64,000 bases of DNA, taken from sequence record OR050627.1. The stretch is one strand, 5' to 3'. Under the pieces are notes generated by a model that saw only the letters and a program-made list of their open reading frames with translations, searched no databases and was not told where the DNA came from. The translations under genes were made by a program, and so were the position numbers. Positions 2,454-28,204 of this stretch are shown piece after piece; positions within the stretch are counted from its first letter, which is position 1; every line of letters begins with the position of its first letter.

Positions 2454-2500
2454 CACTATTGCGTAGTATACATACTAAAACCTACAATATTTAACAAATT

Positions 2501-5500
2501 ATGAACAACACACAGAACTTAGGTTTTCTTGTCGAAAATCATGTTTCGCATAACGTCTTCAAAAGAATTGACGAATCTGTTGCGTTACCAGACGGAGTTC
2601 TGATGCTTATGCGAGGTACGTTTATTCCTATGGACGTTCCTGGTGAAAACGGCCGATGGTACACTTACGCTGACTATGCACCGCAGGTAGAAATGTTACT
2701 ACCTAAAATTGCTAGAAAGGAATGTTTTGGAGAAATTGAACACCCTCAAAGAGTTCACGTTCCTTACGACTTAGCGTCTCACAGAGTTGAGGAAGTTTAC
2801 TACGACAAAGCATCAAATTCTTGGATTGGCACTATAGCAATTTTAGATACTGAAAAGGGTAGAGCAGTCTATGACATCGCCAAAACTGGAGCGCCTATAT
2901 ACGTTTCGCATAGAGCATTAGGTTCAGTTGACCAAAAGACAGGTAAAGGAATTCTACTTAAATTGTTGACTTGGGACGTTACTTCCAATCCATCATTTAA
3001 AGCTGCAGAATTTTCAAGAGCCGAACTTATCAATGAATCTGCTTACGTTTACTTGCCACTAGAAGGCGAAATGCTTAACGAATGCTATGCTGAACTTGGT
3101 TTAACTGCAGAAGACTTTATTAATGAATCTACTGTTACGTTAACGCAAAACGAATTGTTAGCTATGCTTAACGAAGCTGCTAACAATGCAAATGCTTTAG
3201 CTACTGAACGTTACGCAAAGCTTTTAGCTAACGCAATAAACGTAACTGACAATTTTGTTAATGAGCATATTGCGGTTCAGCCATCACAAGTAATTGACGT
3301 AGTTAAGAAAATTAAAGAACGTCCTTGGATGACTGCACAGGAAATGCTTGACCCGGAATTCAAATTTAACGATGAATATATGCATCCTTTAGATTTAATT
3401 GCTGCTATGCAAGCACTTGCTAGTGAAGGAATGCTGTATGACGAAGATGCTCCTGGCTTTGATGAAAAAGAACCTCAAGTAGCATCTATAATTGCAATAC
3501 CTCAACTAGAGGACGTAATTGCTAATTGGCAAATGGAACAGGATGCTTTAGCTGCAGATGCTATTGCCGCCGAAGAAGCTAAAGCTGCTAAATATGCAAA
3601 CGAATCTGCAGACTTCGTAAATAATTTTGCATCTGAATATGCTTTTGTAGGTCCTTATGAAGCTACTAAACAGGCAGTTGCTGCATTAACTGGTAAAGCT
3701 ATTTGCGATCTTTCAGAATCTGTAGAGGCTAGAATTTCTGACATCATGGTTAACGCCAAACCTGGTAATGCAGAAGAGATTATAAATGCTTTAGTCGATG
3801 CAGATTTGTACGCTAATGAAGCTTTGGCAGCTGCTAGCGATCCTAGCAAAAATAAACAAATGCTACAAATTTTAGTTAACTTTACAAAATATGTTGAACT
3901 AAAATTACATGTATTCCATCACAACACTAAAAGCTTTTCACAGCATAAAGCTTTCGATACTGCATACAAAAGCTTCCAAAAGCTAACTGATAGCATAATT
4001 GAACAAGCTATGGGATATAGCGGCGAACGTTACGATAGCATCGACCTTTCAGTTTCTATGCCAATTGTATATGCCGACGATTCTGGCGCAGATGTTATCG
4101 AATCACTTTATTCATTGTCAAAAGTTATCAAACTAATTTCTGAGGATTGGATTGCAGGAGGACTTTCTACGCTATCCGATGATGTTTCAGGAATTGCTGC
4201 TCAGCTTTCTTACTTAATGACGTTAAACGAATCTAAGCTTGACGAATTTGCTAATGAGGGCGTTGCTAGCTGGCTTAAAGATAAGTGGTCTAGGCTTAAA
4301 CGTTGGGCTAACTCAAATATGGATGCTACTGTAACTATTGATGGAGTAGACTACGTTATCGACGACATTCAGGAAGACGACAAAGTAATTTGCAGAGACT
4401 CCGATGGCAGAGCCAAAGAATTTACCTTCGATGAGGTTTATAAATACTTAAACGAAAACAACATATTACAACCACAAACAATGGCAAATACACACATTAA
4501 TGAGGGCGTTGACGAAGCAAAAGCAAACGTTCTAGCTATTCTTTCAGGAGCAAAATTTGTAAGCTCTGCAGATAGCGCAACAGATTATGATTTTTCAATT
4601 GAGGACGATGGTATTATTGCAGCTTCTGATGAAGTAGCTTTGGATATACTGACTGTTCTTAAAAATAACGCAGTCACTGCTTCCGTAGATGGCGCTAAAG
4701 TAAACATAACTTTCGGAATTGTTCCTGCAGTAGTTACTGACCAAATTAACGAATCTTTGGAGGACTTCTGCCAGAAAATGCTAACTTATGCTAACGAATC
4801 TGGTGTAGCGGAACACATTATTAACGCTGCTACTGCAATTCAGAACATTAACTGTGTAACTAATATAAACGAATCTTACGTTACTTACTGCGAACAAATT
4901 TTAGAATTTGCTAACGAATCCGGTGTAGCTTCTGACATTGCTAACGCTAATGCATTGTTACAAGGTGCTTTATCAGTAAAATTTGCTAACGAAGCTGACG
5001 AAACAGCAGCAATTGTATCTGATGCTACTATCGCTGGAGATGTTGCAGTTGATGACGTTAACGCAAGATATGCTGTAGGATGTACATTCTCAGTAGATTC
5101 TCAAAATTTCATAGTTGCTGAATTTGACGGTACTAACGTAGTAACTACTACTGGTGAAACTTTCACTGTAGCTGAATTGAAAAAAGAAGATGACGCTCCA
5201 ATTCCTGGAACTGATGATGCTTTAGAACCTGGTGCTGCTGTAGAAGGCGATAATGATGTTGATATGACTGTAACTCATGTAGGAACTATCGGTTCAATTG
5301 CAATTAATGAATCAGCATATAGCAAAACAAACAAACCAAAAATTGGCGATAAAGTTACTTTCATCATGGATAACCCAGATGGTCCTGGATTCGGAGGAAT
5401 TAAAAATGGCAAAAAAGTTACCGCTACTGTTTCAGATTTTGGCGACTGGGAAGGTGATGGTTATTCACTTGACGTAGTACTTACTGGTGTTTCTGAGGAA

Positions 5501-6544
5501 TACAGCGTTTACACTACTGAACTTATAAATGAAAGCGCTACTAAACCTAAAGTTGGCGACAAAGTTAAAGGTTCAAAAGATTTAACTGCAGGTAAAATTG
5601 GTACAGTTACTGAACTTGGTATGAATCAAGCTACAGTAGACTTCGGTAATGGAAACGCTTATGGAATTTCTTATGAAAGATTCGGTAATGAATTTACTTT
5701 CGTTAATGAATCTTTAAAGTATAAAGTCGAAGATTTTATTTCTGATGTAACTTACAGAGATGGCGTTGGTTATATTGATTTTGGTAGTGAAGTTAAATTC
5801 TCTGGATCAGGCAAAACTTTAACTGTTACTATTGCAGATGACGTTAATAAAAATAAAATTGTCAAGGCTATGGACGCTTATATTAAACAAAATGGCGGAA
5901 AATCTAATGGCTTAGTGTATACATTAAATGAAGCTGCCGAGGATTTAACTGATTTACCTAGCGGAACTGCAGAGAACATTGACCACAAAGTTATCGAGGA
6001 TGGTAATGAAACTAACATTCCAAACAACCTTGATAAGCCGCTAGAAAACAAATTGGCTGAGGACTTCCTTGCTAGAGCAGACAAAGCTGTAACGTTCGAG
6101 CAATGGATCGTTGACCAGGCTGCTTCAAATGACTTAGTAACTCCTCAATTAGTAATGACTGTGAAAACTATTATTTCTGATATGGAAGTTAAGCAAATGA
6201 TTAACGAATCTGCCGTGCTTACTGCAGCATTTATTAACGAATCTGCCGAAGCTACTGAACAATCTAAGCACTTAAAGCTTATTGGCGACCACATTGGACA
6301 ATCTCACAAATATATGTTTGAACACTTGAACGAATCTGCAAAAGGAGTTCTAGTTGCTCAAGCTGAATTGTATAATTTGTCTAGCCAAAATATCCACGAC
6401 TTCCTTGATACAAGAAACTGGGCCCAAATCGCTAATACTACAATTAACGAATCAGTCGCTCAAATTTCTGCAAATATTCAACAAAACGACTGGAAAGCTG
6501 CGCTTAAAGCATCTTTCAGAGCAGGTAGATATCAAACAATTTAA
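2501..6544 (+). CDS. gp21: Prohead protease (T4 gp21-like) fused to a long scaffold/cargo polyprotein
   Basis: First ~190 aa carry GENGRWY, FGEIEHP (His), YVSHRALGSV (Ser) and TWDVTSNPSF. The remainder is acidic with 21 [ILVA]NE[SAG] motifs, a Dps-like segment and two KOW/SH3-like segments. Confidence 0.88.
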   Translation: MNNTQNLGFLVENHVSHNVFKRIDESVALPDGVLMLMRGTFIPMDVPGENGRWYTYADYAPQVEMLLPKIARKECFGEIEHPQRVHVPYDLASHRVEEVYYDKASNSWIGTIAILDTEKGRAVYDIAKTGAPIYVSHRALGSVDQKTGKGILLKLLTWDVTSNPSFKAAEFSRAELINESAYVYLPLEGEMLNECYAELGLTAEDFINESTVTLTQNELLAMLNEAANNANALATERYAKLLANAINVTDNFVNEHIAVQPSQVIDVVKKIKERPWMTAQEMLDPEFKFNDEYMHPLDLIAAMQALASEGMLYDEDAPGFDEKEPQVASIIAIPQLEDVIANWQMEQDALAADAIAAEEAKAAKYANESADFVNNFASEYAFVGPYEATKQAVAALTGKAICDLSESVEARISDIMVNAKPGNAEEIINALVDADLYANEALAAASDPSKNKQMLQILVNFTKYVELKLHVFHHNTKSFSQHKAFDTAYKSFQKLTDSIIEQAMGYSGERYDSIDLSVSMPIVYADDSGADVIESLYSLSKVIKLISEDWIAGGLSTLSDDVSGIAAQLSYLMTLNESKLDEFANEGVASWLKDKWSRLKRWANSNMDATVTIDGVDYVIDDIQEDDKVICRDSDGRAKEFTFDEVYKYLNENNILQPQTMANTHINEGVDEAKANVLAILSGAKFVSSADSATDYDFSIEDDGIIAASDEVALDILTVLKNNAVTASVDGAKVNITFGIVPAVVTDQINESLEDFCQKMLTYANESGVAEHIINAATAIQNINCVTNINESYVTYCEQILEFANESGVASDIANANALLQGALSVKFANEADETAAIVSDATIAGDVAVDDVNARYAVGCTFSVDSQNFIVAEFDGTNVVTTTGETFTVAELKKEDDAPIPGTDDALEPGAAVEGDNDVDMTVTHVGTIGSIAINESAYSKTNKPKIGDKVTFIMDNPDGPGFGGIKNGKKVTATVSDFGDWEGDGYSLDVVLTGVSEEYSVYTTELINESATKPKVGDKVKGSKDLTAGKIGTVTELGMNQATVDFGNGNAYGISYERFGNEFTFVNESLKYKVEDFISDVTYRDGVGYIDFGSEVKFSGSGKTLTVTIADDVNKNKIVKAMDAYIKQNGGKSNGLVYTLNEAAEDLTDLPSGTAENIDHKVIEDGNETNIPNNLDKPLENKLAEDFLARADKAVTFEQWIVDQAASNDLVTPQLVMTVKTIISDMEVKQMINESAVLTAAFINESAEATEQSKHLKLIGDHIGQSHKYMFEHLNESAKGVLVAQAELYNLSSQNIHDFLDTRNWAQIANTTINESVAQISANIQQNDWKAALKASFRAGRYQTI

Positions 6545-6754: not shown

Positions 6755-8476
6755 ATGCAAACATTATTTCCAAATGCTAACCAAGTTAGCAACATGGTAG
6801 ACAGATGGTCTGAATTTATTAACGAAGCAGCTCCTAAAGGTGGTAGTACTCTATCTGATGGTAAAAGAGCAATGATTGCTCAGGTTGCAGAATTCCATGC
6901 TCATGGTAAGGATATCGCAACTGGAGGATTCTTGAACGAATCTATCATCGGTACAAATATTATGTCAAACGGTGCTAACATGAACGGAATGGGTTCTATT
7001 ACTCTTCCTACTAACGTTAAAGCTGGATTTACTCAATTCAACCAACAAACTCCTGGTTCTGGTGATGTTCCTGTGACTGTGCTTTCAATGGCAATGTCAG
7101 TAGCTGCGACTACTATCGGTTTTGATTTGTTACCTACTATTCCAATTTATCAGCCTGCAGTAATGCTACAGTATGTAGATTACCTTTACGGTGGTGGTAA
7201 ACTTGATTCTGCTGATAACCCTCCTTTGATCGTTATGGCTAGAATCGAGGAACTTAGAGGACACCTTGATCTTAGACAAGGTTCTAAAGTTGCTATCCAC
7301 TCTGTTGCAGGTGATGCTACTTCTGGATGGACATTCGAGTTCGTTGGATTTACAAGATTAGAAGGGTATGCAACTTTAAAAGTTGACACTTTCGCTAACA
7401 AAGTAACTCCTGCATTAGGCACTCTTGCTTTAGTTGAATTTACTATTGATGGTGGCGCTCCTATGACTATTGCTCCTGCAGGAAATCCTAAATTAGAATT
7501 GGCTAGAGCGGTTGAAAACCACTTCTCAATGTTCACTGCTTACGGAAACCTTGATGGTGAAGGAGTTGATAGAGCTGAAGCTGAAAAGGGTACAAGATCA
7601 GTTATCGAAATGAGAACTTACTCTAAAGTAGTAAGAACTAAAGAACATGCTGTAGAAGGTATCGTTTCAAGACAACAAGCTAGAGATATCAAAGCTATGG
7701 GTCTTGATGCATTCCCTCAATTGAAAGTTGCAATGCAGAATGACATCTCTCAGTCATTAAACAAGGAAATCCTTATGAGAATGAGACAGATGGGTGTTTC
7801 TACACACTTAATGTTACAGAAATCTCAGGGAGTTAACTTGAACACTTACATTGACTTACCTGCTAACACTTCTAAGCCAATCGTACAGTTTAAAACTTCT
7901 CCACTTATCGACAAGAACGGAGTTAACCAAACTGCTAACTTCTTACCGGCGCCTAACTCTGAAACTAACTCGGCTGCTGAAAACCTTTGGACTAGACAAA
8001 GAAGAGTAACTTCTACCATCATCACTGGTGCTGCTCTAGTAGGACAGGCTTCTTTCCACGGTTCTGCTGATGCTGTAGTTGTTAACTCTCAGTTAATGGC
8101 TGCCATTAAGGAATCTGTTGGTTACCAACCAGCTACTATCGAGAACAAAATCTCTCAGTCTACAAAGGCTCTTTATTATGCAGGTACTATTTCTGACGTT
8201 GCAGTTTACTGTGACCCTAACATGAAATGGAACGATACTACTGCTATCTTGGCTAGAACAGGTAAAACTGATGACGGTCTAGATATTAACCAATTGGCAG
8301 AAGGGCTAGTTTTTCTTCCGTATGTCTTGAGTTCGGAAGTTGAAATTATCACTGAAGGAACTATGGGTCCTAAAGCGTTAATCGAAACTGTTTATGCTAT
8401 CGGTGAAATCGGTATCAGACCAGAACTTGCTTACTTAACTATCGTATTCGATAACGGATTTGGTAGATGGGCATAA
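6755..8476 (+). CDS. gp23: Major capsid protein, T4 gp23-like
   Basis: Start moved to ATG 6755, downstream of TATAAATA 6715-6722. Contains the gp23-type segments GFDLLPTIPIYQPAVMLQYVDYLY, SRQQARDIKAMGLDA and MQNDISQSLNKEIL. FINE/A (E24) and FLNE/S (E62) are predicted maturation sites. Confidence 0.92.
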   Translation: MQTLFPNANQVSNMVDRWSEFINEAAPKGGSTLSDGKRAMIAQVAEFHAHGKDIATGGFLNESIIGTNIMSNGANMNGMGSITLPTNVKAGFTQFNQQTPGSGDVPVTVLSMAMSVAATTIGFDLLPTIPIYQPAVMLQYVDYLYGGGKLDSADNPPLIVMARIEELRGHLDLRQGSKVAIHSVAGDATSGWTFEFVGFTRLEGYATLKVDTFANKVTPALGTLALVEFTIDGGAPMTIAPAGNPKLELARAVENHFSMFTAYGNLDGEGVDRAEAEKGTRSVIEMRTYSKVVRTKEHAVEGIVSRQQARDIKAMGLDAFPQLKVAMQNDISQSLNKEILMRMRQMGVSTHLMLQKSQGVNLNTYIDLPANTSKPIVQFKTSPLIDKNGVNQTANFLPAPNSETNSAAENLWTRQRRVTSTIITGAALVGQASFHGSADAVVVNSQLMAAIKESVGYQPATIENKISQSTKALYYAGTISDVAVYCDPNMKWNDTTAILARTGKTDDGLDINQLAEGLVFLPYVLSSEVEIITEGTMGPKALIETVYAIGEIGIRPELAYLTIVFDNGFGRWA

Positions 8477-8609: not shown

Positions 8610-10067
8610 ATGATTAAACGTAAAAGACTTACATATAGCGACGTTATAGCCGACTGCAAAAAGACACACGATAATTACTATGAATATGTAGATACTTCTG
8701 CAACTTGGTATAAGAAAACTGACAAACTTAGAATTATATGTCCAGTTCACGGAGAATTTGAACAATCTGGTAAAAATCATAGTAATGGCCAAGGATGTAC
8801 TAAATGCAAAAAGAACATGCAGTCATACGACCAAATTATGTCAAAAGTTTTAGAAGTTCATGCTAAACGAGGATATGCTTACGAAGATACTTCTGCAGAA
8901 TATACTGTGTCTACATCGTCTATGCTTAAAGCTAACTGTCATAAACATGGCAAATTTGAAGTCGGCGCGCATGCGCATAGTGTTGGCGTACTAGGCTGTC
9001 AAGGTTGTTATACTGATGATTTAGTTGAACGTCAAAGATATAGTAAAGATGAAATGCGCAATATTTGTACAGATATTTTGGCTAAACGAAACTTATCCAT
9101 TATAGACATTACTTTTTATGTCGATAAAGCAAATTCTAATTTTATAATAAATTGCCCTAAACATGGTAACTTTGAAAAGAACGCATATCAGATACTATTA
9201 AAACAAGGCTGCCCTAATTGTGTAGGTTACAACTCATCTAAAGCCGAAATATTTTTAAGAGATCATTTAGTCAGTAACGGAATTTTAGATGCTGTAGGAC
9301 GTAAACGTTTTAGACATCATGAAACTAATAAACTTTATGAAATTGACTTACAATCACCAAGCTTAAAAATTGGCATAGAATTTAACGGAATACATTGGCA
9401 TAGAGGTGAAATTTTTAAGCATAAGCATATGTTAAAAACTACAAGTCTAGACTATATGAACTGGCAGCTAATCCATATTTTCGAGGACGAATATCATACG
9501 AAGTTTAACTCAGTAATGTCAATGATTAATCATAAACATGGAGTCACTAAACAAAAAATTCATGCCAGGAAAACTAAGACTGCCCTAATTGACGAAGATA
9601 CTTATACACAATTCTGTAATGAAAATAGCGCACAAATTTTTGACAAACTAGCATTTAATTACGTCGGACTATATTTGGCTGAAACATTAGTTAGCGTAAT
9701 TGCTTATAACGTAGATAGCAAAGCTAACGTAAACATCATAAACATTGCAATGCTAAACAATCATACGATAATTGGTGGAGTTGGCAAATTAGTAGCTTAC
9801 ATAGAACGTTCAGAACGTCCGGCATCAATAACTGCTACGCTAAACAGGCAATTCTCAACTAAGCATAACGTTTTTGAAAAGTTAGGATTTGATTTTGTTG
9901 AATATACTGAACAAAATTTTATGTACAGTATACATAGTAGTACTAGGATTTTGCCAGAACACACGCCCATCGAACATCAAATAGATTACAACAAAGTCTG
10001 GGATGTCGGTAACATTATTATGAAAAAAGTGTTCAAATTATTTTCATATGTCATTTATTTTTCTTAA
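8610..10067 (+). mobile_element. Free-standing homing endonuclease: Zn-ribbon repeats + PD-(D/E)xK (DUF559/Vsr-like) nuclease + C-terminal GNAT-like domain
   Basis: Three I-x-C-x-x-HG-x-F...G-C-x-x-C repeats; YEIDLQSPSLKIGIEFNGIHWH; KIHARK. Inserted immediately after the capsid gene with its own promoter at 8581-8605. Confidence 0.75.
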
Positions 10068-10287: not shown

Positions 10288-10716
10288 ATGAACATAGCAA
10301 ACATACAAAGGGCAATAGATCACCTTAAGACTATACAGCCAGAACATTTTGATATGACAGCATATCGTGACGTTAGAGATCAGTATGAGCCACAATGCAA
10401 TTCTGTCGGCTGTATAGTTGGTCACTGTACTATACTAGATAATGACAATATTTACGCTAACTTCATTGAACGTAACGACACAATTATGTTCACTGAATGG
10501 TCTTGCAATTTCTTTGGCATTGGGCTACTAAGCAAAACATGGGACTATATGTTCTCTTGTACTTGGGCAGATGCGCCAAAAACTAACACTATCGAACATG
10601 CAATATATCGAATGGAACGTATAATTGCAGGCTACAAACCAGGTCAAATTGATGAAGAGTTTGCGTATGAAACTGGCTATACTGAGCTTGAACCTGGCTA
10701 TACTGACAATGACTAA
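10288..10716 (+). CDS. Hypothetical phage protein (FDM...CNSVGCIVGH family)
   Basis: 142 aa with a Cys/His motif seen in phage hypotheticals. Confidence 0.6.
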   Translation: MNIANIQRAIDHLKTIQPEHFDMTAYRDVRDQYEPQCNSVGCIVGHCTILDNDNIYANFIERNDTIMFTEWSCNFFGIGLLSKTWDYMFSCTWADAPKTNTIEHAIYRMERIIAGYKPGQIDEEFAYETGYTELEPGYTDND

Positions 10717-10744
10717 CTTTTATAAACCAATAAATTTTAAAACA

Positions 10745-11695
10745 ATGACAAACATCAACGCGACCGAAAGACTCATTGCAATTTTTGCAGATGTACACGA
10801 GCGAAACTTAAAAAATGTACAACGAACTTACGCTACATCAGAATATGATGCTAACGGAAGACCTTACAAAAGTAAAATTAACTACGTCTATGCAGTATTA
10901 AGCCAAGACGTTATGACATCTATGCTGGAGGATTCTAAAATTTATGACTATCCAGGATTTGAATTTACTATTCCGGTTACTGACTTAAGCAAGCTGCCTC
11001 AACGAACTGAACATTTTGCAGTTTACGTTTTAGCCGATGGCTCAGTTATTAACATTTACGTAGACTACAACCAAAAGCCTAATCAAATGGTTATGTACTC
11101 TGCAGAACAAGAATATGACTTTGACAGACTTAGAAACGGCAGCAGGTCAAACCCTACACTAGGCAAAGTTTATTCAAAAATGTATCACAAAATAGTAACT
11201 ACAACACCAGTTACTGATTACTTGGGCGTTATGCTTTATAGACATCTTAACAACTTAGAAAACGTGCATACTAAATTTTATATGCTAATTTCTAGCAATG
11301 CTGCAAAGTATTTGAAAGATGAGGCTGACTTAACTGACCAACTAATGCTAACAAAAATTTCGGAAATTAAACACAATAAGTCAAGATTTGGCGTGTTTAA
11401 GCCTAAATACGATGTTAGTGGATATGGTCGTAAATTCGCAAATATTCTCGAAAACCATGCAGAAATTCAACTAATAGAATGTCATGACAAAGAATCTTCT
11501 ATTAACCAAGCGCATGCATATCCTATGGCAGTAGTGCTTACTAAGTACGTTATGCATAACCGATTCGACCAGGAATTAACACATTCGCCTATGAATCCAA
11601 ATGACCATACGCCAAAATCGCTAACATCTGAATTGATTGAGGATATTTTACAGCATTCTATAAAGCAACAAAACAAAGTTTTTTTAAAAAACTGA
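10745..11695 (+). CDS. Hypothetical protein, possibly two degenerate gp23 A-domain-like repeats
   Basis: Likely start ATG 10745 (leader ttttaaaaca). YVYAVLSQDVMTSM...INIYVDYNQKPNQMVM and FYMLISSNAAKYL...RKFANILENHAEIQLIE resemble the gp23 A-domain pattern. Confidence 0.4.
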   Translation: MTNINATERLIAIFADVHERNLKNVQRTYATSEYDANGRPYKSKINYVYAVLSQDVMTSMLEDSKIYDYPGFEFTIPVTDLSKLPQRTEHFAVYVLADGSVINIYVDYNQKPNQMVMYSAEQEYDFDRLRNGSRSNPTLGKVYSKMYHKIVTTTPVTDYLGVMLYRHLNNLENVHTKFYMLISSNAAKYLKDEADLTDQLMLTKISEIKHNKSRFGVFKPKYDVSGYGRKFANILENHAEIQLIECHDKESSINQAHAYPMAVVLTKYVMHNRFDQELTHSPMNPNDHTPKSLTSELIEDILQHSIKQQNKVFLKN

Positions 11696-11741: not shown

Positions 11742-11766
11742 GTTTCAAAAATTTTTCTTATATTTG
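11742..11766 (+). promoter_or_regulatory. Bacteroidota-type early promoter (TATATTTG)
   Basis: TAnnTTTG at 11759-11766 upstream of the truncated MCP paralog. Confidence 0.75.
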
Positions 11767-11793: not shown

Positions 11794-12528
11794 ATGCAAA
11801 ACAAACCAATCTTAACAAGAGACCAAAAGCTAGCAATCCTAGGAGATAACCCACATAACTGGGACGTAGACAACTTGGAAATTGTACAAGACATTGCAAT
11901 TACTAACGAATTTGTGCATCAGGCTAACGAAGCTAACTACAAAACTTTGCTAGGCTTAGGCTGGACAAACCACTACACAATTAACTTGCTAGACAAAATT
12001 AACATCAACTATTTTATTGCTACTCCGGAAGTTTCAGGAAAACCTTCAAGTGACTTCAAAATTTCAATGAGGAATCACTTTGACCAGGATGTTTCAGAAG
12101 ACTTAGGCACTACACCAAATGCAGAAGCTGGAACTGGCTTAGCTAACCTGTGGACTAGGCAAAACGCTTTAGTTGCACACTTATTTAGAGCGTCAAGCAT
12201 TATGAATACTATGTACGGTAACTTTGGCAAGACAATAATCGTAAACACGCATCTTGCTGCAGCTATAAAAAGTACAAATTTATTCAAGCCTACGCCAATT
12301 GAGGAATTGGTTGAAACTTCTACATCTACTATGCCGTACGTTGCAGGAACAATTACTACTGAAGATGGCAAAATGTCACTGAAAGTTGTTGTTAATCCTC
12401 AGCAACCTTGGGCAGACACTACGGCAATCCTGCATGATGGTGAATTTGACTTTCAGACAATTGACATGGAGGATGGCTTAACTTCAATTTCATTCGCATT
12501 TAACAATGACATTGGCCCATGGGCATAG
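11794..12528 (+). CDS. Truncated major-capsid-protein paralog (A-domain region only)
   Basis: ANLWTRQNAL / IIVNTHLAAAIKS / YVAGTI / NPQQPWADTTAIL / FNNDIGPWA align by eye to MCP ENLWTRQRRV / VVVNSQLMAAIKE / YYAGTI / DPNMKWNDTTAIL / FDNGFGRWA. Confidence 0.85.
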   Translation: MQNKPILTRDQKLAILGDNPHNWDVDNLEIVQDIAITNEFVHQANEANYKTLLGLGWTNHYTINLLDKININYFIATPEVSGKPSSDFKISMRNHFDQDVSEDLGTTPNAEAGTGLANLWTRQNALVAHLFRASSIMNTMYGNFGKTIIVNTHLAAAIKSTNLFKPTPIEELVETSTSTMPYVAGTITTEDGKMSLKVVVNPQQPWADTTAILHDGEFDFQTIDMEDGLTSISFAFNNDIGPWA

Positions 12529-15384: not shown

Positions 15385-16299
15385 ATGGCAAAAACATTTG
15401 AACTTATAAAAGATGGTAGCATAAAGCATAACGGCTGTACGCTTTACAAAATCAAAGCTTTGGCGGACATTACAAATCATGGCGTAAAGGCTGGAGATAT
15501 TGGCGGCTGGGTAGAATCTGAAAATAACTTACAAAGCAATGAAGCTTGGATTGGTGATGCTGCTATGGTTTACGGAGATGCTGTAGTTTCAGAAAAGGCG
15601 TTAGTTACTGAATTTGCACAAGTTTCAGGGTTTGCTGAAATTAAAGGTTATGCTAAAGTACAAGGTAACGCTAAAATTTTAGGAAATGCTAGAGTTATGG
15701 GCAATTGTACAATTGAATGCTATGCTACAGTTTGTGGCAACGCATTTGTTGCAGACTTTGCCATAATACGAGGTCGTGCGCAAGTTTCAGGTGAAGTTCA
15801 AGTTAAAGACAATGCTAAAATTTGGGATCATGTAAATGCTTCAGGCAGTGCTATAATTAAAGGTTATGCGCAAGTTTACGGTCAAGCTAAAGTTTATGGC
15901 GGGACCATTGCAGGTAATACTATAGTTTATGATTATGCAAAAATTGGTTCGCGTGCTTATCTTAACAGCGGTATATTTTGCGGTCGAGCAATTATTACTG
16001 ATCATTCAGATTTTGCATTAATTTGCAACATTGGTTCAAGAAAAGGTACTACTATAGCATATAAAAATGATAATATTGCGCAAAATACATCGCAAATTGA
16101 AATTATATGCGGATGTTTTAAGGGTGACTTGCAACAATTTTATAACAGAGTAACTGAACATTACGGCGGACGTAATGCAGGCATAGCTTACAGACGTTAT
16201 TACAAAGAATACATGGCTGCCATACAACTTATTGAAGCTAAATTTACGGTTAAAGTAAAACGTAAAAGTCGACTTTTATCATGGTTATCAAAATCATAA
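15385..16299 (+). CDS. Left-handed beta-helix (hexapeptide-repeat) phage protein
   Basis: N-terminal LYKIKALADI...VKAGDIGGWVESENNL followed by many [AV]-x-V-x-G-x-A hexapeptides; C-terminal IICGCFKGDLQQF. Confidence 0.8.
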   Translation: MAKTFELIKDGSIKHNGCTLYKIKALADITNHGVKAGDIGGWVESENNLQSNEAWIGDAAMVYGDAVVSEKALVTEFAQVSGFAEIKGYAKVQGNAKILGNARVMGNCTIECYATVCGNAFVADFAIIRGRAQVSGEVQVKDNAKIWDHVNASGSAIIKGYAQVYGQAKVYGGTIAGNTIVYDYAKIGSRAYLNSGIFCGRAIITDHSDFALICNIGSRKGTTIAYKNDNIAQNTSQIEIICGCFKGDLQQFYNRVTEHYGGRNAGIAYRRYYKEYMAAIQLIEAKFTVKVKRKSRLLSWLSKS

Positions 16300-20936: not shown

Positions 20937-21599
20937 ATGGCAAAAATCTTAAAAGAAATTACGACTATCGACTTAGGCATAAAATATGCAGGTAAAGTAT
21001 CAAAGTCAATCACTGACACTTTTGCAGACAGGCTTAACAATGTTACAATTAACGCAATAGTAACTCAGTTTGTGCATTCACCAGAAGGCGCCAAAATTAT
21101 GTTCATGGGTGTTGGTAAAAATTCATACCTTTCGCATAAACTTGCGGCTACTTGTCAGTCACTTAACATTAATGCAAACTACTTTGATTCTGTGCATGCT
21201 ATGCATGGTGACTTAGGCGCTTTACGCCCAGGCGATATCGTTATAGCATTTTCAAAATCAGGCAAAACTGCAGAATTACTGCATACTTTGGCTTATTTAA
21301 AGAAGCACAAAAAACATTTTGGCGTAACTACAGTAGGCGTTTTTGCATCCGATGAAGGCTACAATTCCGAGGCAGTTACTTCAATGGAAATAACTAAAAC
21401 TACAGACTACCAAATTTTGCTTAGATCATGCCAAGAATTGGACGACAACAAAACAGTTCCTACTACATCGGCATTAGTTATGCAAGCAGTCGGCGACGTT
21501 ATAGCATTACAAATTGCTTCAACTAACGGGCTTACTACAGAACAATTCGGGCTTACTCATCCTGGTGGATTAATTGGCGCAATACATAACAAAGACTAA
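20937..21599 (+). CDS. SIS-domain sugar-phosphate isomerase (KdsD/arabinose-5-phosphate isomerase-like, no CBS domains)
   Basis: MGVGKNSYLSHKLAAT, AMHGDLG, FSKSGKTAEL, PTTSA, THPGG. Confidence 0.88.
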   Translation: MAKILKEITTIDLGIKYAGKVSKSITDTFADRLNNVTINAIVTQFVHSPEGAKIMFMGVGKNSYLSHKLAATCQSLNINANYFDSVHAMHGDLGALRPGDIVIAFSKSGKTAELLHTLAYLKKHKKHFGVTTVGVFASDEGYNSEAVTSMEITKTTDYQILLRSCQELDDNKTVPTTSALVMQAVGDVIALQIASTNGLTTEQFGLTHPGGLIGAIHNKD

Positions 21600-22219: not shown

Positions 22220-23962
22220 ATGACAAAAAAGAAATTTGAAAACTTAATTATTGTAGCATCTGGCGCAGGAACTAGAATGGCTGAGTATACGATGAACAAC
22301 ACAATTCCAAAGTTGTTAGTAAGTCTAGGAAACGAAACAATCTGGTCGTCTATGCTTAAAAATATTGACCAAGTAGCTGAGTATGTTTTTGTTGTAGCAA
22401 ATTCTAAGCACATTCCAATGCTTAAAGAGGTTGCAAAACTTACATATCCTGAACAATCAGAGGACATTATCTACGTCGAATACGATGAGCAAGATGGCAC
22501 TGCTAACACAATTTCAAAAGTAGTTTCTGACAGAATGATTGATGGTAATGCTTTGATAGTTTGGTCAGATATTCTTGAAGCTTCTACAGAATCTTTGCTA
22601 CCTCTTACTGGTGCGTTATCTAAGCTTAATGAATATGATGTAGAAAACCTGGAAATGGTAGTTATTACAGACAATCAGCCAAGACATCGATTTAAAATTG
22701 ATGGTCCAGTTATTGAAGAAGTTGCCGATGCTTCTGGTAACATAGTAGGCGCTTATGCTACTAACGAAATTGCAAAATTCGGAAATTGGTCAGGTTCTTA
22801 CGGTAGAGGTTTAAGGGATTTTAAATTTACTGGTGAAGTGTTGAGACATAACCAGGATTTTATTTCGCTAGTCAAAGTTATGCATGAACGTGATGATATT
22901 AGAACTATCAAAACTTTCAAAGCGGATTTTATTGACCTTGGAGATTCTGCAAAATACCAAGCTTACATGGCTTCCAAAGAGATCAAAACTCGTTACTTTA
23001 ATGCTTTGGAAATTGACACAGACAGTGTTACAAAACGTGCAATAAACACTAAAGGCAAAGAAGTCATGGCTAACGAGGCAGACTTCTACAATTTTATGGA
23101 ATATGCAGGCTTTGATTCTATGTTTGCAAAAGTTATTGAAATTATTGGCGATGACGCTAACTATATTGACTGCATAACATTAGAGAAGCTTGACAAAACT
23201 ATACATCAACATATTACTGAGCATTCAGCTACAAGCAAACAAAAAACTGCAAGATCATATGCTGCAAGGATAGCTTACAAAAACTTTAAGCAGTTTATGA
23301 AGCCTTTGCATACTGCAAATCCCGAGGACTTCATACAACAAATGGATTTTTCAGATGATGCGTTGTATAACGCTGCTTGGAAGGAATACATTGAAGTAAC
23401 TAGGTCTAGGTACGAATCAATCAAAGGATTGCTTTCGGCATCTGACGTTATAAGATTTAATGGCGAACCGGCGCCTAACTTTGACTATGTAATGGCTAAG
23501 TTAGAGGACTACTTAAAAAATGCAAATCCTCTTAGACTAGGCCTTATTCATGGTGACACTAATACTGCCAATGTTATGATGGATGCCAAAGGTGCTATGA
23601 AGCTTATTGACCCTCGTGGAGTTTTTGGTGACATGCAATATGCTGGTGATACTAATTATGACCTAGCTAAATTCATTTATGGATTGACAGGCTATACTGA
23701 CTTTAATGATTCTACAGACTTTAAAGTTAAAAAGGACGGTACTTCGTTATACTGTGAATTATTCAACAAATTGCCGTCGCCATGGTATGTTTGCCAGGAT
23801 AACGATGGTAACGATGATATCAATGCAGTTATCTTAGTAGGCTTAATTTGGCTTAAACTACCTGCTTACATTATCAACAATCCGCTAAAATCGTTAGTAG
23901 CTTATTACAAAGGCTTAACATTGCTAAACAAAGCATTGAATGAATACGAATTTGCAAGATAA
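22220..23962 (+). CDS. Fusion: NTP-transferase (sugar-phosphate nucleotidyltransferase) + APH/choline-kinase-like phosphotransferase
   Basis: N-terminal IIVASGAGTRM...IPKLL; C-terminal LIHGDTNTANVM, KLIDPRG, GDTNYDLAKF; own promoter 22162-22186. Confidence 0.85.
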   Translation: MTKKKFENLIIVASGAGTRMAEYTMNNTIPKLLVSLGNETIWSSMLKNIDQVAEYVFVVANSKHIPMLKEVAKLTYPEQSEDIIYVEYDEQDGTANTISKVVSDRMIDGNALIVWSDILEASTESLLPLTGALSKLNEYDVENLEMVVITDNQPRHRFKIDGPVIEEVADASGNIVGAYATNEIAKFGNWSGSYGRGLRDFKFTGEVLRHNQDFISLVKVMHERDDIRTIKTFKADFIDLGDSAKYQAYMASKEIKTRYFNALEIDTDSVTKRAINTKGKEVMANEADFYNFMEYAGFDSMFAKVIEIIGDDANYIDCITLEKLDKTIHQHITEHSATSKQKTARSYAARIAYKNFKQFMKPLHTANPEDFIQQMDFSDDALYNAAWKEYIEVTRSRYESIKGLLSASDVIRFNGEPAPNFDYVMAKLEDYLKNANPLRLGLIHGDTNTANVMMDAKGAMKLIDPRGVFGDMQYAGDTNYDLAKFIYGLTGYTDFNDSTDFKVKKDGTSLYCELFNKLPSPWYVCQDNDGNDDINAVILVGLIWLKLPAYIINNPLKSLVAYYKGLTLLNKALNEYEFAR

Positions 23963-24052: not shown

Positions 24053-26722
24053 ATGGCAAAATTTACAAAACTTGCTGGAGAAGTTGCTAAGCTTTACGAC
24101 GGTAAAGTTACTGGTAACACTATCAAATTTGACAGTGAGGACGACTTATTTAAAGCAGCTGATGAAATTGCTGATCAGTTTGCATTTACGATGGACCAGG
24201 ATAAACTGACCATTGAGTTCCTTAACGAAAACATCGACATTAAATTCCTTAAACAATTTGCATCTGCTATGGGCGTTAGCAAATTTACAAACGAATATGT
24301 CGGTAAACTTACTAAACAAATAGGTATTCAGCTTAATGAGACTGAAGTTGACACAGTTACTACATTACTAAACAAAGTAGAAAGTCCGGAATATCCTGAT
24401 GTTGCTAAAGTTGCAGCTGACCCAATGCAACAAATTGCAGATACAATTACAGCATCTACGTCAACAGGCGCTACATTAGACATTGTTGATGGCGAAAATT
24501 CTGCAAAGCAAATAGTTATTAGAACTGACGGCAAACTTATTGCAGCCACGCCTACTGACATCGTAGCAATCAATGAATCTGCTTACGTGCACTACGGAAT
24601 GCATCAACTTAATGAAAATGAGTACAACGCACTTAAAGCTTTGGCAGATGTTGAAGCTAAACGTAGATTCCTAACAAGCATGGGTATTCAAGACCTTGAC
24701 GCCGAATCAATTGCTAAGAACTTAGAGTTGCTTAAACCTCTACATCCTGACATGGATGCAAACGGACTACTTCCACTAAACGAAGCCAAAGTTGAAATTG
24801 AGGTTGGCGTTACTTACGCTAGCAAAGCTAATGATGCTTTGGAAGATGTTAAACATCTGTACAAAAAACTAAAGCAAAAAGCTTCAAACTCATGGGTTGT
24901 CAAAGACTATGACGTCAATGATATTGTAGAAACTTTAGAAAAAGCCGGAGTTCCTGCTAACGAAATTTACGTTAACGAGTCTACAAAAGACATGGACATA
25001 TACAACTTACAATCTAAAGTCGCGCTATTCTGTAAAAAGTCAGGACTTTCTGGAGCCGATGTACAAAAAGCTTTACTACTTGTTAACTTAGAAGCTAAAG
25101 AAGCTAAGCCTAATTTTAGCAAATACATTAACATCAAGGACAGTATGCTAAACGAATCTGCAGATGCTGAGGACGCTGAGGAAATGTTCGAACGTAAGAA
25201 CAAAGCTTACTCTAAGATGATTGAGCAAGATGGCTTAGCTAAAGAACTTTCAGAATTCCTTGCGTCTTTTGGCGAAAACACTAAAATTCCTAAGGATGGC
25301 TTAGTTGGTGAGTATGGCGAACTTTCTGCAGATTTGCAAGAAGGAATCAACAAATTCATGGAAGAGCGTGGTTATTTTGCTAATGAGTCTGACAGTACTA
25401 ACGAAGAAATTGAAAGTGTATACAAATTTGAGTCGATAAAAGATATTGAAGTTGCTGCAGCGGCTAAAGGATATGTTTGCAAAGGGCATTCAGGACAATC
25501 TGAGTCTTCTGACAAATACAAATTTGACATTCTAGCCAAAGGTGGCAAAAAATGTGCAATGGGTGTTTATGACAAAACTAAAAAGATTGCAATATTGGAT
25601 GTTAATGATGAACATAAAGGAACTTCATTACTTGAGGCTAAAATGATCAATGAGAGCGCAGGCATTGAAAACTTCTTTGCATCTATGGGCGCTACGTTCA
25701 GCAAAGAGTTACGTACAGATGGCACTTACAAATACCAAGTCACTGGCTTAGTAGGTTATGCTAATGAGGCTACTGAAGTGCCTAACACTGCCGATCTAAT
25801 TGCATTTGAGATTCTTAAACTATACGGAAACTTCAAAGAAGCTACAAGGCTTTCACGTTCAGTAGTTAAGCAAGCATTACGTAACGTTATTGACACGTTG
25901 AAAGTTGACGACTCTTGGTTAACTGACGAATCAAAGTTTATTTCGCTTTTTGAAGCTATCGACACTATGAGAGTAGACTTTGGCCTAATTGACGAATCAA
26001 TACCTCAGCAAGAAGCTAAAATTGCCGGAACTAAAGCTAAGATAGCAGAAATTAAATCAGAAGCTAAGGCTGCTTCAGCTAACGCATCTTCTAAAATTTC
26101 TACAGAAAAGGCTAAGCTTGCAAATGCTAAAGCTACTTTGAAAAACCTTAAAAAGTCAAAGTCGTTAAATGAATCTAAAGCACCTCAAGGTGTAGGCGGA
26201 AATGTTTACGTAGTACCAAACTCGTCTTTCCAAAATCCTTGGCTGACTCATAAACTTGAAACGTCACAAGGCATGAGAGGATATCAGTTTGCAAATCAAT
26301 TTAAGTCTAACATAGTTAACGCAGACATTATGGTTGACTATTATTTGCCTAAAGATGACAATGTTGTTAATGAAGTTGGTATGGATACGGAAGGAACTTC
26401 AAAACCGCAAAAATCTGAAATTATAGCTACGCCAGTTTCAATTTACATTAACGAAAACAACGTACTTTGTTTCAATGAAAATCCGATCCCTTCTGAAATT
26501 GCAGAAAACGGTCAAATTGGCTCAGTTGCACAATTCAAGGAATATGCTAAATACATTCTTGGAGGAGGCATTCCTGGTGCAGAATCTGCATGCGAAGAAG
26601 GCCCAGTAACTGAAGAGGATATTGCAAAAATTGACATTATTTGTGATGCATGCGGTGAAAACTATGGCGCTATGATGGGTAAATTTGATGATTATCTTAG
26701 TCAGAAAGCTTCCAATTGCTAA
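24053..26722 (+). CDS. Large acidic putative internal-head polyprotein
   Basis: 889 aa with 8 [ILVA]NE[SAG] motifs; late-like TATAAATC at 24019-24026. Confidence 0.65.
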   Translation: MAKFTKLAGEVAKLYDGKVTGNTIKFDSEDDLFKAADEIADQFAFTMDQDKLTIEFLNENIDIKFLKQFASAMGVSKFTNEYVGKLTKQIGIQLNETEVDTVTTLLNKVESPEYPDVAKVAADPMQQIADTITASTSTGATLDIVDGENSAKQIVIRTDGKLIAATPTDIVAINESAYVHYGMHQLNENEYNALKALADVEAKRRFLTSMGIQDLDAESIAKNLELLKPLHPDMDANGLLPLNEAKVEIEVGVTYASKANDALEDVKHLYKKLKQKASNSWVVKDYDVNDIVETLEKAGVPANEIYVNESTKDMDIYNLQSKVALFCKKSGLSGADVQKALLLVNLEAKEAKPNFSKYINIKDSMLNESADAEDAEEMFERKNKAYSKMIEQDGLAKELSEFLASFGENTKIPKDGLVGEYGELSADLQEGINKFMEERGYFANESDSTNEEIESVYKFESIKDIEVAAAAKGYVCKGHSGQSESSDKYKFDILAKGGKKCAMGVYDKTKKIAILDVNDEHKGTSLLEAKMINESAGIENFFASMGATFSKELRTDGTYKYQVTGLVGYANEATEVPNTADLIAFEILKLYGNFKEATRLSRSVVKQALRNVIDTLKVDDSWLTDESKFISLFEAIDTMRVDFGLIDESIPQQEAKIAGTKAKIAEIKSEAKAASANASSKISTEKAKLANAKATLKNLKKSKSLNESKAPQGVGGNVYVVPNSSFQNPWLTHKLETSQGMRGYQFANQFKSNIVNADIMVDYYLPKDDNVVNEVGMDTEGTSKPQKSEIIATPVSIYINENNVLCFNENPIPSEIAENGQIGSVAQFKEYAKYILGGGIPGAESACEEGPVTEEDIAKIDIICDACGENYGAMMGKFDDYLSQKASNC

Positions 26723-26902: not shown

Positions 26903-28204
26903 ATGTCAAATTACATAAATGAAGCAATGTCACTTAATGGCAAAGTGGCATATAACGAAGGCCAAGTAGCTTTCAAAACTAACACTGCGTTCTCCATCAT
27001 ACAGCATTTAGCTTGGCAATACAACGACACTTACGTTGGTAGTGTTAAGACGATAAAAATGCCTTACGAAATTAAAGCCAAAGCAGTTAAGCAACTTTCA
27101 TTAAATGGAACTCCTTGCATTTTTAGAGAACTTGGTGAACTTGAAACATTCCAGTCTGTAGGTGAATTTGACTTCCTACAAATGGTTTATATGTTCACTG
27201 ACAAGCCTGAATTGCTACAATACATTGACCAGTCATACGTAGAATTTGGAATTTTCTTACAAAATGGCACATGGTGGTTTGTTGAAAAGCAGAACAACGC
27301 TAAGCTTTTTGAAGAAATTGACGAACTTAACGTTGGCTACTACAACCTAGATTTGCCAACAGCTAAGCTGCCAAAAACAATTTCTATGATTGATTCTGTT
27401 AGTCAAGGCAAAACTGCATTACGTACATATGCAAAAGACAATGCACTTACTGATTTTGTTATATCTACGTTTACTACGCCAATGGCAGTACAACTTAATG
27501 CGTATCCATCAATAGCTAAATTTGCATCATTTGCTCCAGATGCTAACGAATTTACTAACCAACTAATTTCTGTAGTTTTAAAAGAAGAAACGGAAGTTCC
27601 TTACTTACTTGACAAAACTTCCGAGCATATGGTATTGTTAATATGTGTAGATGGCGTAAACAAATGGTTCAAAATTTCAGCATCAGACGTTCTTGCTGCA
27701 ATTAGCAAAAATCAACAAAACTTTTTTGTAGATAGCGTTAAGAACTCACTAGAATCTAGCAGATTAAATGCTGGATTAAAATCAGATGACTTGTATGCAG
27801 CAATTAAACGTTTACGTGCGGTAGCATTATTCAACAATTTGCTACAAGATACTGGTTACTCTGGCTATTATTACGTTAAGAACAACTCACATACACTAAA
27901 GGCTGATGCTTTCAACAAATTCAGCATTAATTCTCAAGGTTATGTTAACCAGATTTTTAATGACAAGGACTTAGTGCTTTACAAGGACACTATAATTTCA
28001 TATAGCGTCGATCTTAAAGCAGGCATCGTAGTTATTGGCTATCCTGCGTTAAACCATACTTGCTATATAACGTCAATTGATCAGTTGCCAGAATTGCAAA
28101 ATGAATTCCTGGATGGCAATGCTAAACTGGACACAGTAGTTTCAATTTCCGACATCTACTTTAAGGACAACGGTTCCAAGAAAGGCGATGGCGGTAAAAA
28201 ATAA
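26903..28204 (+). CDS. Late protein of unknown function, with N-terminal YINE/A motif
   Basis: 433 aa; TATACATA at 26876-26883. Confidence 0.65.
   Translation: MSNYINEAMSLNGKVAYNEGQVAFKTNTAFSIIQHLAWQYNDTYVGSVKTIKMPYEIKAKAVKQLSLNGTPCIFRELGELETFQSVGEFDFLQMVYMFTDKPELLQYIDQSYVEFGIFLQNGTWWFVEKQNNAKLFEEIDELNVGYYNLDLPTAKLPKTISMIDSVSQGKTALRTYAKDNALTDFVISTFTTPMAVQLNAYPSIAKFASFAPDANEFTNQLISVVLKEETEVPYLLDKTSEHMVLLICVDGVNKWFKISASDVLAAISKNQQNFFVDSVKNSLESSRLNAGLKSDDLYAAIKRLRAVALFNNLLQDTGYSGYYYVKNNSHTLKADAFNKFSINSQGYVNQIFNDKDLVLYKDTIISYSVDLKAGIVVIGYPALNHTCYITSIDQLPELQNEFLDGNAKLDTVVSISDIYFKDNGSKKGDGGKK

Follow-up and report, generated by a model that had tools for sequence, protein, structure and literature searches.

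A probable protease-scaffold fusion with modular inserts between putative cleavage sites in Chryseobacterium phage MA9V-1

The window analysed here, a stretch of 64,000 nucleotides (nt), is 100% identical to part of the genome of Chryseobacterium phage MA9V-1 (OR050627.1, with record base 124001 as window base 1), a jumbo myovirus of 213.5 kb infecting C. indologenes MA9. Our subject is one unbroken open reading frame (ORF) at positions 2501-6544 (+), which encodes 1347 amino acids (aa) and is identical to MA9V1_151, a protein annotated in the record only as 'prohead core protein serine protease'; the published papers on MA9V-1 and on its sister phage MA9V-2 are silent on its length, motif and processing. 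From its N-terminus the chain consists of a protease domain, a linker, a block of cassettes and a C-terminal domain that probably belongs to a scaffold. The ORF lies between the gene of a portal protein of the T4 gp20 type (423-2135, (+); Pfam Portal_T4, E 1e-54; PHROG 213), its upstream neighbour, and that of a major capsid protein of the gp23 type (6755-8476, (+); Pfam Gp23, E 1.6e-12), and the same order of portal, protease and capsid genes was found in L009, L011, Tenacibaculum phage pT24 and Sphingomonas phage PAU.

The protease domain and the putative cleavage motif

Residues 1-179 (2501-3037, (+)) were assigned to the gp21-type prohead serine proteases based on PHROG 207, on a profile match to the T4 structure 5jbl and on conserved columns. 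Residues 25-241 matched PHROG 207, 'head maturation protease', with E 9e-25. The domain used as a single sequence found no match in the PDB and a profile was needed; the profile of 20 sequences (the domain and 19 short relatives) matched the T4 'Prohead core protein protease' chain 5jbl with E 8.7e-13. Conservation was counted in 142 relatives that are pairwise at most 50% identical, and His81 (2741-2743), His94 (2780-2782), Ser136 (2906-2908) and Asp159 (2975-2977) were kept in 99% to 100% of them, with 100% for Ser136 and 99% for His81. The 5jbl positions aligned with Ser136 and His81 both carry alanine, which we infer to be inactivating substitutions of the crystallised construct, and the serine and histidine that belong at these positions are presumably the catalytic pair of T4 gp21. 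A preliminary description of this DNA had proposed a gp21-like protease domain of about 190 residues; the gp21-type domain stands, and its end is placed near residue 179 rather than 190.

Directly behind this domain lies the sequence L-I-N-E/S (residues 176-180; 3026-3040, (+); the slash marks the putative cut, with P1 in front of it and P1' behind it), which is the first site of the motif described below and the probable self-release site of the protease. Its P1 residue, Glu179, was kept in 99% of the 142 relatives, while P2 was Asn in 83 of 135, P1' was Ser in 100 of 135 and P3 was V, I, F or L. At the corresponding position of the alignment, T4 gp21 reads I-T-E-S. Judged from this conservation, the first site is probably the family-wide self-release site of the protease; the phiKZ and SPN3US proteases are known to cleave themselves at the C-terminus (PMC5694885).

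The motif N-E-[SAG] occurs 21 times in MA9V1_151, with I, L, V or A before every copy and with its Asn at residues 178, 208, 224, 367, 439, 576, 585, 667, 750, 765, 790, 805, 830, 936, 1010, 1069, 1143, 1235, 1246, 1277 and 1316. The 20,000 residue shuffles of the protein gave a mean of 1.7 sites and a maximum of 8, the composition-based Poisson P for 21 sites was 1e-22, and NE was the most over-represented dipeptide of the chain (z 7.5). The preliminary description had counted the same 21 copies, had called the 2373-aa fibre (32444-39565) and both topoisomerase subunits (54275-56254 and 57261-58730) free of the motif, and had placed it at E24 and E62 of the capsid protein. All three statements proved exact, with zero sites in the fibre and the topoisomerase subunits, and with both capsid sites present when numbered from the annotated start at 6755. 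Its definition of the motif as [ILVA]-N-E-[SAG] holds for the 21 copies but is somewhat too narrow, since 28 sites of the broader form h-x-E-[SAG] (h for hydrophobic) are present and P2 is thus not strictly Asn.

One may ask whether the motif marks a cleavage site at all, given that N-E-S, found at 15 of the 21 sites, fits the sequon N-x-S/T and that residues 752-831 are a true tandem duplication. The motif could then be another signal such as an N-x-S modification sequon, a by-product of duplication, or the result of an assembly or annotation artefact that joined genes, all of which we regard as very improbable. With Ala or Gly at P1', the six remaining sites fall outside a sequon, and the residue conserved in the family is the Glu (99%), not the Asn. 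The Asn codons at the 21 sites (AAC 12, AAT 9) are like those of the rest of the ORF, the P1' codons are of six kinds, the sites stand in unrelated sequence contexts, and the only DNA repeats in the ORF are the motif sites themselves and the one tandem duplication; such mixed codons indicate selection on the peptide, and the sites are therefore not copies of a DNA repeat. The long ORF is also present in MA9V-2, and even longer ones in independent metagenome assemblies. In addition, the placement of the motif in the capsid propeptide and in N-terminal leaders, as shown below, fits a protease. On the evidence of the codons, of the conserved Glu and of the long ORF in MA9V-2 and the metagenomes, we rejected the interpretations as DNA repeat, glycosylation sequon and assembly artefact.

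Architecture of the tail

To place the tail in its family, we ran an exhaustive homologue search over 1.84 billion representatives, which gave 1418 hits, and the architecture was read from the best 150. A word-indexed search with the complete protein, limited by a length filter, found only MA9V-2. Most of these best 150 of the 1418 relatives are protease-plus-tail proteins of 500 to 750 residues with the protease at the N-terminus, and eight have 960 to 1621 aa; all are metagenomic and without names. The fusion is thus not peculiar to MA9V-1. In the tails of 126 fusion proteins, h-x-E-[SAG] was found 1416 times in comparison to 517 expected, and h-N-E-[SAG] 345 times in comparison to 43 expected. 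An iterated profile placed a domain of about 200 residues at the C-terminal end of 111 of 151 representatives, the eight long ones all among them. In MA9V1_151 this domain covers residues 1145-1347 (5933-6541, (+)) with four sites; it is predicted to be helical, with a predicted local distance difference test (pLDDT) score of 58 to 84, and is the probable scaffold core.

P0004, a 703-aa protein encoded in the gene order gp2-portal-P0004-capsid and the closest of the short relatives, aligns with residues 2-201, 250-372 and 1152-1343 of MA9V1_151 (the last with E 2e-41) and nowhere else, keeps all four N-E pairs of the C-terminal domain, and has its breakpoints at 372 and 1152, no more than about eight residues from sites 367 and 1143. 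As P0004 covers both ends only, residues 369-1144 or nearly so (3605-5932, (+)), between sites 367 and 1143 and absent from P0004, appear to be a block of added cassettes. The preceding linker (residues 180-368; 3038-3604, (+)), which is acidic, has sites at 208 and 224 and is modelled as low-confidence helices by AlphaFold2 (AF2), is partly common to P0004. At the other end, the last 30 residues after the final site (6452-6541, (+)) form a candidate capsid-binding tail by analogy with other scaffolds. With an isoelectric point (pI) of 10.3 they are the only basic fragment, while the whole chain has a pI of 4.4 and every other fragment is acidic (pI 4-6). The final site, 30 residues from the C-terminus, has Glu in 56% of all rows of the family alignment and in about three quarters of the ungapped rows.

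The same interval in isolated relatives points to a similar role. In pT24, gp140 is a 527-aa protease-tail fusion annotated 'prohead core scaffold' and has 20 E-S dipeptides, and PAU has separate genes there, noted in its record as protease, scaffolding and internal capsid protein. From its position, charge and helicity, from the family-wide C-terminal domain and from this analogy, the tail is very probably a scaffold, and to that extent the earlier claim of a protease joined to its own scaffold in one ORF was borne out. A protease, a site-rich variable middle and a conserved C-terminal domain appear to be the standard architecture of the lineage, of which MA9V-1 would be an expanded form.

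Among the added cassettes, the best characterised is a Dps/ferritin-like one, residues 441-577 (3821-4231, (+)), which was identified by Pfam, profile and Foldseek searches and by separate homologues. It matched Pfam DUF5856 with 46.8 bits against a cut-off of 34.6. A profile of nine sequences of the cassette matched the Dps-family chains 1ji4, 4evd, 2d5k and 5lbh (best 1ji4, E 3.7e-4), and the columns of the Dps metal-site residues His, His, Asp, Asp and Glu were invariant in the nine sequences. Foldseek gave a Dps probability of 0.95, with E at only 0.29 owing to the use of the whole tail as query; this fold search with the 1172-residue tail model gave nothing at E <=0.001, and high probability for the Dps matches alone. 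Cassette 441-577 is a predicted Dps-like domain, in agreement with the Dps-like unit that the preliminary description had listed among the released domains. In related phages the domain also occurs as separate proteins (P0018, P0022 and P0082). The leader of P0018 (317 aa) ends in Y-A-N-E/S, as at residue 367, and its domain ends in L-T-L-N-E/S, as in MA9V1_151, while P0082 (459 aa, 13 sites) is encoded remote from the head genes, in a phage with the same topoisomerase genes.

The remaining cassettes are less well defined. Residues 587-668 (4259-4504, (+)) form a small beta-plus-helix cassette, the best predicted of those with unassigned fold, in which residues 605-655 have four strands and one helix at pLDDT 71-80 and which matched PHROG 3711 weakly (E 0.005). 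The following cassette, residues 669-751 (4505-4753, (+)), has a weak homologue in the tail of P0042 (1418 aa; E 1e-4). Residues 752-831 (4754-4993, (+)), with five sites, are the tandem duplication of a 40-residue helical unit, organised as (15 + 25 residues) x2 with a DNA repeat spacing of 75/45/75 nt and helices at pLDDT 58-80. A very acidic cassette, residues 832-937 (4994-5311, (+); net charge -19; pLDDT <60), is followed by a beta-rich one, residues 938-1011 (5312-5533, (+)), which has no family match and whose strands reach pLDDT 50-67 in the long model and <50 in the short model. The latter was the first of two units that had been called KOW/SH3-like; for both candidates (938-1011 and 1012-1070) there was no Pfam or PHROG match, and their AF2 strands come from a model with a mean pLDDT of 39. 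Nine cassettes searched singly against Pfam and PHROGs had no significant match; Pfam on the whole of MA9V1_151 gave only S77 and DUF5856, and on six long relatives nothing beyond the protease. A tblastn search of 50,697 phage genomes with residues 587-1151 and with a second multi-site protein, MA9V1_179, found only MA9V-2. Structure prediction of the segments between the sites, proposed as a check by the preliminary description, gave pLDDT 71-80 for residues 605-655, 58-84 for the C-terminal domain and a mean of 39 for residues 832-1144.

Comparison with MA9V-2 showed that these cassettes are gained and lost as units. The MA9V-2 orthologue of MA9V1_151 (1207 aa, 93% identical) lacks, by pairwise alignment, exactly residues 1010-1142 (5528-5926, (+)), a block of two cassettes that extends from one N-E to the next but one. 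MA9V1_179 (24053-26722, (+); 889 aa), which has 8 sites (P 1e-7) and neither a protease domain nor a family match, is 155 residues shorter than its MA9V-2 orthologue, the difference consisting of three stretches inserted in MA9V-2 (about 87, 5 and 65 residues), with x-E/S on both sides of each. The large indels (about 65 residues or more) between the two phages in the two multi-site proteins thus run from E/S site to E/S site in 4 of 4 cases. The last cassette of MA9V1_179 is homologous to a segment of P0035 located after the Dps-like domain, and by their homology cassettes appear to be exchanged among multi-site proteins. The tail is therefore modular, as the earlier picture of a string of discrete small domains had it, with cassettes gained or lost exactly between sites and the Dps-like one found separately in relatives.

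Predicted substrates and promoter motifs

The genome-wide motif count that the preliminary description had proposed as a check was made over 263 ORFs, with the genome read as five separate stretches, and gave 70 sites in comparison to 22.6 expected, with an N-terminal bias outside the multi-site ORFs. There, 23 of the 41 sites had their Glu in the first 50 residues (P 5e-7). For control motifs the share in the first 50 residues was 8% to 24% in seven of eight cases, with 20% expected, and h-Q-E-[SAG] (4/8) was too sparse. In the major capsid protein the two sites are Glu24 (6824-6826) and Glu62 (6938-6940). Glu24 was invariant within h-x-E-[SA] in five capsid proteins, down to 31% identity, and a second h-x-E near position 62 was present in all five, though not in one alignment column for the two most distant. 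By analogy, these sites fit the removal of a propeptide of about 60 residues as in T4. Leader-like stretches were also seen in the ORF at 26903-28204 (+), which has sites at residues 7 and 19 and, 27 nt upstream, the promoter-like 14-mer described below, and in that at 29449-30489 (+), which has four N-E-[SAG] in its first 131 residues. Such N-terminal stretches resemble the short leaders by which T4 internal proteins are targeted to the capsid (PMC5694885). Its occurrence behind the protease domain family-wide, in the capsid propeptide and at about 20 other N-termini supports the view that the motif behaves like the cleavage site of the protease.

Several neighbouring genes deserve mention here. 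The small ORF MA9V1_150 (2205-2453, (+)) between the portal and protease genes is a candidate small core protein, and its location is one that we take to correspond to that of T4 genes 67/68. Residues 12-14 of its product form a motif site, and its C-terminus, F-V-N-E, resembles a cut site. The 244-aa product of the ORF at 11794-12528 has diverged from the major capsid protein, of which it corresponds to the C-terminal half alone (26% identity to residues 325-529, E 8e-20). This paralogue carries a motif site at residue 46, its gene is preceded at 35 nt by a host-type promoter motif, and it is possibly a vertex protein that is truncated or unusual. The ORF at 10625-11695 was considered as the N-terminal half missing from this paralogue, and was rejected. 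An HNH/homing-type endonuclease gene (8610-10067; PHROG 559, E 2e-49) adjoins the major capsid gene, as it does in MA9V-2.

A late-promoter-like 14-mer, TATAMATACTWAAA, had five exact matches in the window in comparison to 0.05 expected. Four copies are intergenic and lie 27 to 44 nt before the starts of the fusion ORF, the ORF at 26903, the fibre gene and the ORF at 43101; the copy for the fusion ORF is at 2467-2480 (+), 34 nt upstream of its start. The fifth copy is inside the fusion ORF (4439-4452), an exact match spaced 42 nt from the in-frame ATG of Met661 (4481-4483; whole element 4439-4483, (+)), and is followed by an A/C-rich stretch, as in the other leaders. The 48 bases around it are identical in MA9V-2, which is unexceptional at 90% overall identity. 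The predicted Met661 product has 687 aa, lacks the protease and starts with M-A-N-T-H-I-N-E/G, like the leader of the 26903 ORF. The internal 14-mer suggests, as a lead only, a nested protease-free product from Met661. No usable consensus of a late-promoter-like motif was found inside the fusion genes of L009 and L011.

A different element, TATATTTG(T/C)A, is compatible with the Bacteroidetes -7 element TAnnTTTG and occurs before many genes (for example at 11759, 18326, 22179, 29410, 54233 and 57181). Of its 15 listed intergenic copies, most are 34 to 91 nt before the next start, and both topoisomerase genes are among those preceded by it. Head and tail genes have another motif in front of them, TATA(C/A)ATAC, and two promoter classes are probable. 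Elsewhere, the window has an envelope-sugar gene cluster (15385-16299, 20937-21599 and 22220-23962) for an LpxA-like acyltransferase, a KpsF/GutQ isomerase and a GlmU-like protein, the last with an extra kinase-like C-terminal part, and a Kdo-8-phosphate phosphatase is annotated outside the window (record 72188-73558). At its C-terminal end the 2373-aa fibre has a Peptidase_S74 intramolecular chaperone domain (residues 2274-2317), and it is very poor in Glu (2.0%). In the record, the family-B DNA polymerase is annotated as two genes (110343-111830 and 114019-115296) with two unrelated ORFs in between.

Processing model, fate of the pieces and relation to known systems

Taken together, we consider it probable that MA9V1_151 is a self-processing protease-scaffold fusion with modular inserts. 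In the predicted sequence of events, the C-terminal helical domain and the basic 30-residue end would recruit the chain to the assembling procapsid, and after closure of the shell the protease would cut after Glu in hydrophobic-Asn-Glu/Ser, Ala or Gly, first at Glu179 behind its own domain and then at about 20 further sites of the tail, so that the tail would fall into 21 pieces of 9 to 143 residues. It would also cut the capsid protein at Glu24 and Glu62 and the short N-terminal leaders of about 20 other proteins. In comparison to ordinary fusions of 500 to 750 residues, the middle (about 369-1144) has apparently gained site-flanked cassettes, among them a Dps-like four-helix domain and several small beta-rich units, and these come and go as whole units between close relatives.

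Several points weigh against this model. The Pfam S77 family (PF03420, MEROPS S77) scored 25.9 bits, just under the curated cut-off of 27 bits. The tail has no sequence similarity to known scaffolds, including PAU gp152 and the pT24 tail, and in BLAST and phmmer searches against the neighbours of the pT24 and PAU proteases there was no significant match, so that an equivalence of the cassettes with PAU gp152-155 was not demonstrable. Both structure models, of the 1172-residue tail (mean pLDDT 45) and of residues 832-1144 (mean pLDDT 39), are of low confidence, and the published virion data for MA9V-1 are a sodium dodecyl sulfate gel with at least 15 bands of 20-260 kDa without assignment (PMC10537231). 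A protease on every scaffold chain would mean an unusually high protease copy number, unexplained unless the nested product exists; the Met661 product would ease this problem. Finally, recombination at the short repeat AA(T/C)GAA, rather than selection for modules, could be part of the reason why the indels are in register, though even with such microhomology they show that the units are separable.

As for the fate of the pieces, the preliminary description had them stay in the head as cargo, which was not borne out: all but the last 30 residues are acidic (pI 4-6), as is typical of expelled scaffold. The short acidic helical pieces most likely leave the head as scaffold debris, and a core that is cut up and expelled would account for the acidic charge, for the abundance of very short pieces and for the presence of sites throughout the family. 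The whole insert may be a disposable enlargement of the scaffold, with cassettes that serve as spacers for the size or shape of the core, sites that serve for exit, and nothing but perhaps the protease remaining; we hold this to be quite possible, if a little short of likely. It agrees with the uniformly acidic fragments and the basic C-terminal tail, with the close spacing of many sites (pieces of 9-31 residues) as in T4 gp22, with the site-rich tail being the rule in 126 relatives, and with the fact that multiple sites aid the clearance of peptides from the capsid (PMC5694885). However, MA9V-2, with a genome of similar size (218.5 kb), is without two of the cassettes, which are thus not needed for capsid size, 703 residues suffice in a relative whose genes stand in the same order, and conservation of every residue of a Dps metal site would be unexpected in a spacer.

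That same conserved metal site, together with the cassette turnover in sister phages and the separate leader-bearing homologues, fits retained accessory proteins, and it is possible, though we say so tentatively, that at least some cassettes are retained in the head. A related reading, which we consider rather unlikely, is a cargo polyprotein, in which the folded cassettes, namely the Dps-like and the beta units, are kept in the mature head in hundreds of copies and reach the cell together with the DNA, the scaffold being their carrier. The Dps-like cassette indeed comes from a real independent domain family with all its metal-site residues kept, and in relatives the domain is a separate protein with a leader of the T4-internal-protein type; cassettes are swapped between multi-site proteins and differ between phages of one host strain, like accessory functions, and ten fragments of 59-143 residues are in the size range of T4 internal proteins. 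On the other hand, every cassette is acidic or neutral, unlike DNA-associated internal proteins, and most have no confident fold; by our own estimate, about 900 residues per chain at scaffold copy number would add tens of MDa to a head that holds 213 kb; and no effector-type domain was found in MA9V1_151 or the six long relatives (by Pfam, and by PHROGs on the MA9V1_151 cassettes). Delivery of the cassettes into the host as functional cargo is viewed as distinctly unlikely. Also improbable, in our opinion, is a scaffold that acts as an open 'slot' system, in which any domain between h-N-E/S sites would enter procapsids at scaffold copy number, be freed, be partly retained and be delivered with the DNA, and in which a nested Met661 transcript from the internal late promoter would set the ratio of cargo and scaffold to protease.

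With regard to known systems, one of the closest is the T4 prohead core, with a homologous protease, the same order of portal, protease and capsid genes, and cleavage, predicted for MA9V-1, behind Glu at sites that have a hydrophobic P3. The T4 scaffold has many cleavage sites, the T4 capsid protein loses about 60 residues, and the leaders of internal proteins end in the motif (PMC5694885). A key difference is that gp21, gp22, gp67/gp68 and the internal proteins of T4 are encoded by separate genes, while MA9V-1 has the protease and the presumed scaffold in one chain, with extra domains between them; in addition, P2 is almost fixed as Asn in MA9V-1, and its tail has no sequence similarity to gp22. 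Among isolated phages, pT24 gp140 and PAU gp151-gp155 include the closest relatives of the protease (33% to 37% identity), each with a site directly after the protease domain. The pT24 protein has less than half the length of MA9V1_151 and no Dps-like unit, PAU has its protease, scaffold and internal capsid proteins as separate genes, and P2 is without Asn bias in both.

The gp21 fold is related to that of herpesvirus assemblin. The herpesvirus maturational protease precursor, lambda C/Nu3 and P2 gpO likewise have an N-terminal protease and a C-terminal scaffold in one chain; the herpesvirus-type precursor is also cut at a release site adjoining the protease and again close to its capsid-binding C-terminus, as predicted for MA9V-1, and herpesviruses and lambda make a nested in-frame scaffold product, which in MA9V-1 (4439, Met661) is only predicted. 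These fusions differ from MA9V1_151 in having two or few sites and no inserted foreign domains, and the protease folds of lambda and P2 are unrelated. The phiKZ, 201phi2-1 and SPN3US proteases (MEROPS S80) are also from jumbo phages, and there too a three-residue motif with a cut after Glu defines the set of head proteins; Pfam Peptidase_S80 also scored in three long relatives of MA9V1_151. Proteases of this type cleave themselves C-terminally, and long propeptides have multiple sites (PMC5694885, PMC10052503). In contrast to MA9V1_151, the protease of the phiKZ group is separate, with about 260 residues, and its substrates are separate genes; the scaffold of these phages was never identified (PMC5694885). 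Polyvalent proteins (PMC5512222) resemble MA9V1_151 in combining many unrelated domains in one chain and are thought to be packaged and released by an embedded peptidase, and Iyer et al. 2017 liken them to viral polyproteins (PMC5512222). They differ in having a zincin-like metallopeptidase and enzymatic or DNA-binding effector domains, neither of which was found in MA9V1_151 by Pfam or PHROG.

The cutting of core proteins at many sites, motif-ended leaders and self-cleavage of the protease (PMC5694885, PMC10052503) as well as protease-scaffold fusions and the polyprotein analogy (PMC5512222) are thus already established. The polyprotein strategy in a dsDNA phage that had been put forward has close precedents in the multi-site cutting of T4 gp22, gp67 and gp68, in the protease-scaffold fusions and in the polyvalent proteins (PMC5512222). 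In the literature covered, which leaves out subscription journals, there is no description of a gp21-type protease-scaffold fusion as the rule of a large lineage, and none of a near-fixed P2 Asn, of foreign folded domains between the sites or of chains of up to 1.6 kaa (thousand aa).

The results provide a concrete candidate for the capsid scaffold of a jumbo phage, and a sharp motif, checkable in the sequence, that predicts the processed head proteome of MA9V-1 to include the capsid protein, the two multi-site proteins and about 20 proteins with short leaders. More than 100 metagenomic protein clusters without names, of 500 to 1600 residues, have one architecture of a protease, a site-rich variable middle and a conserved C-terminal domain. 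The site-to-site indels in two phages of one host strain illustrate a route by which new head components can be gained or lost while assembly proceeds undisturbed. A Dps-like protein in the capsid would, if the cassettes are retained, be a new kind of packaged protein, and if the slot reading is true, the Dps-like unit would be a packaged DNA-protecting or iron-handling protein and the relatives of 1.3 to 1.6 kaa would be larger versions of the same system.

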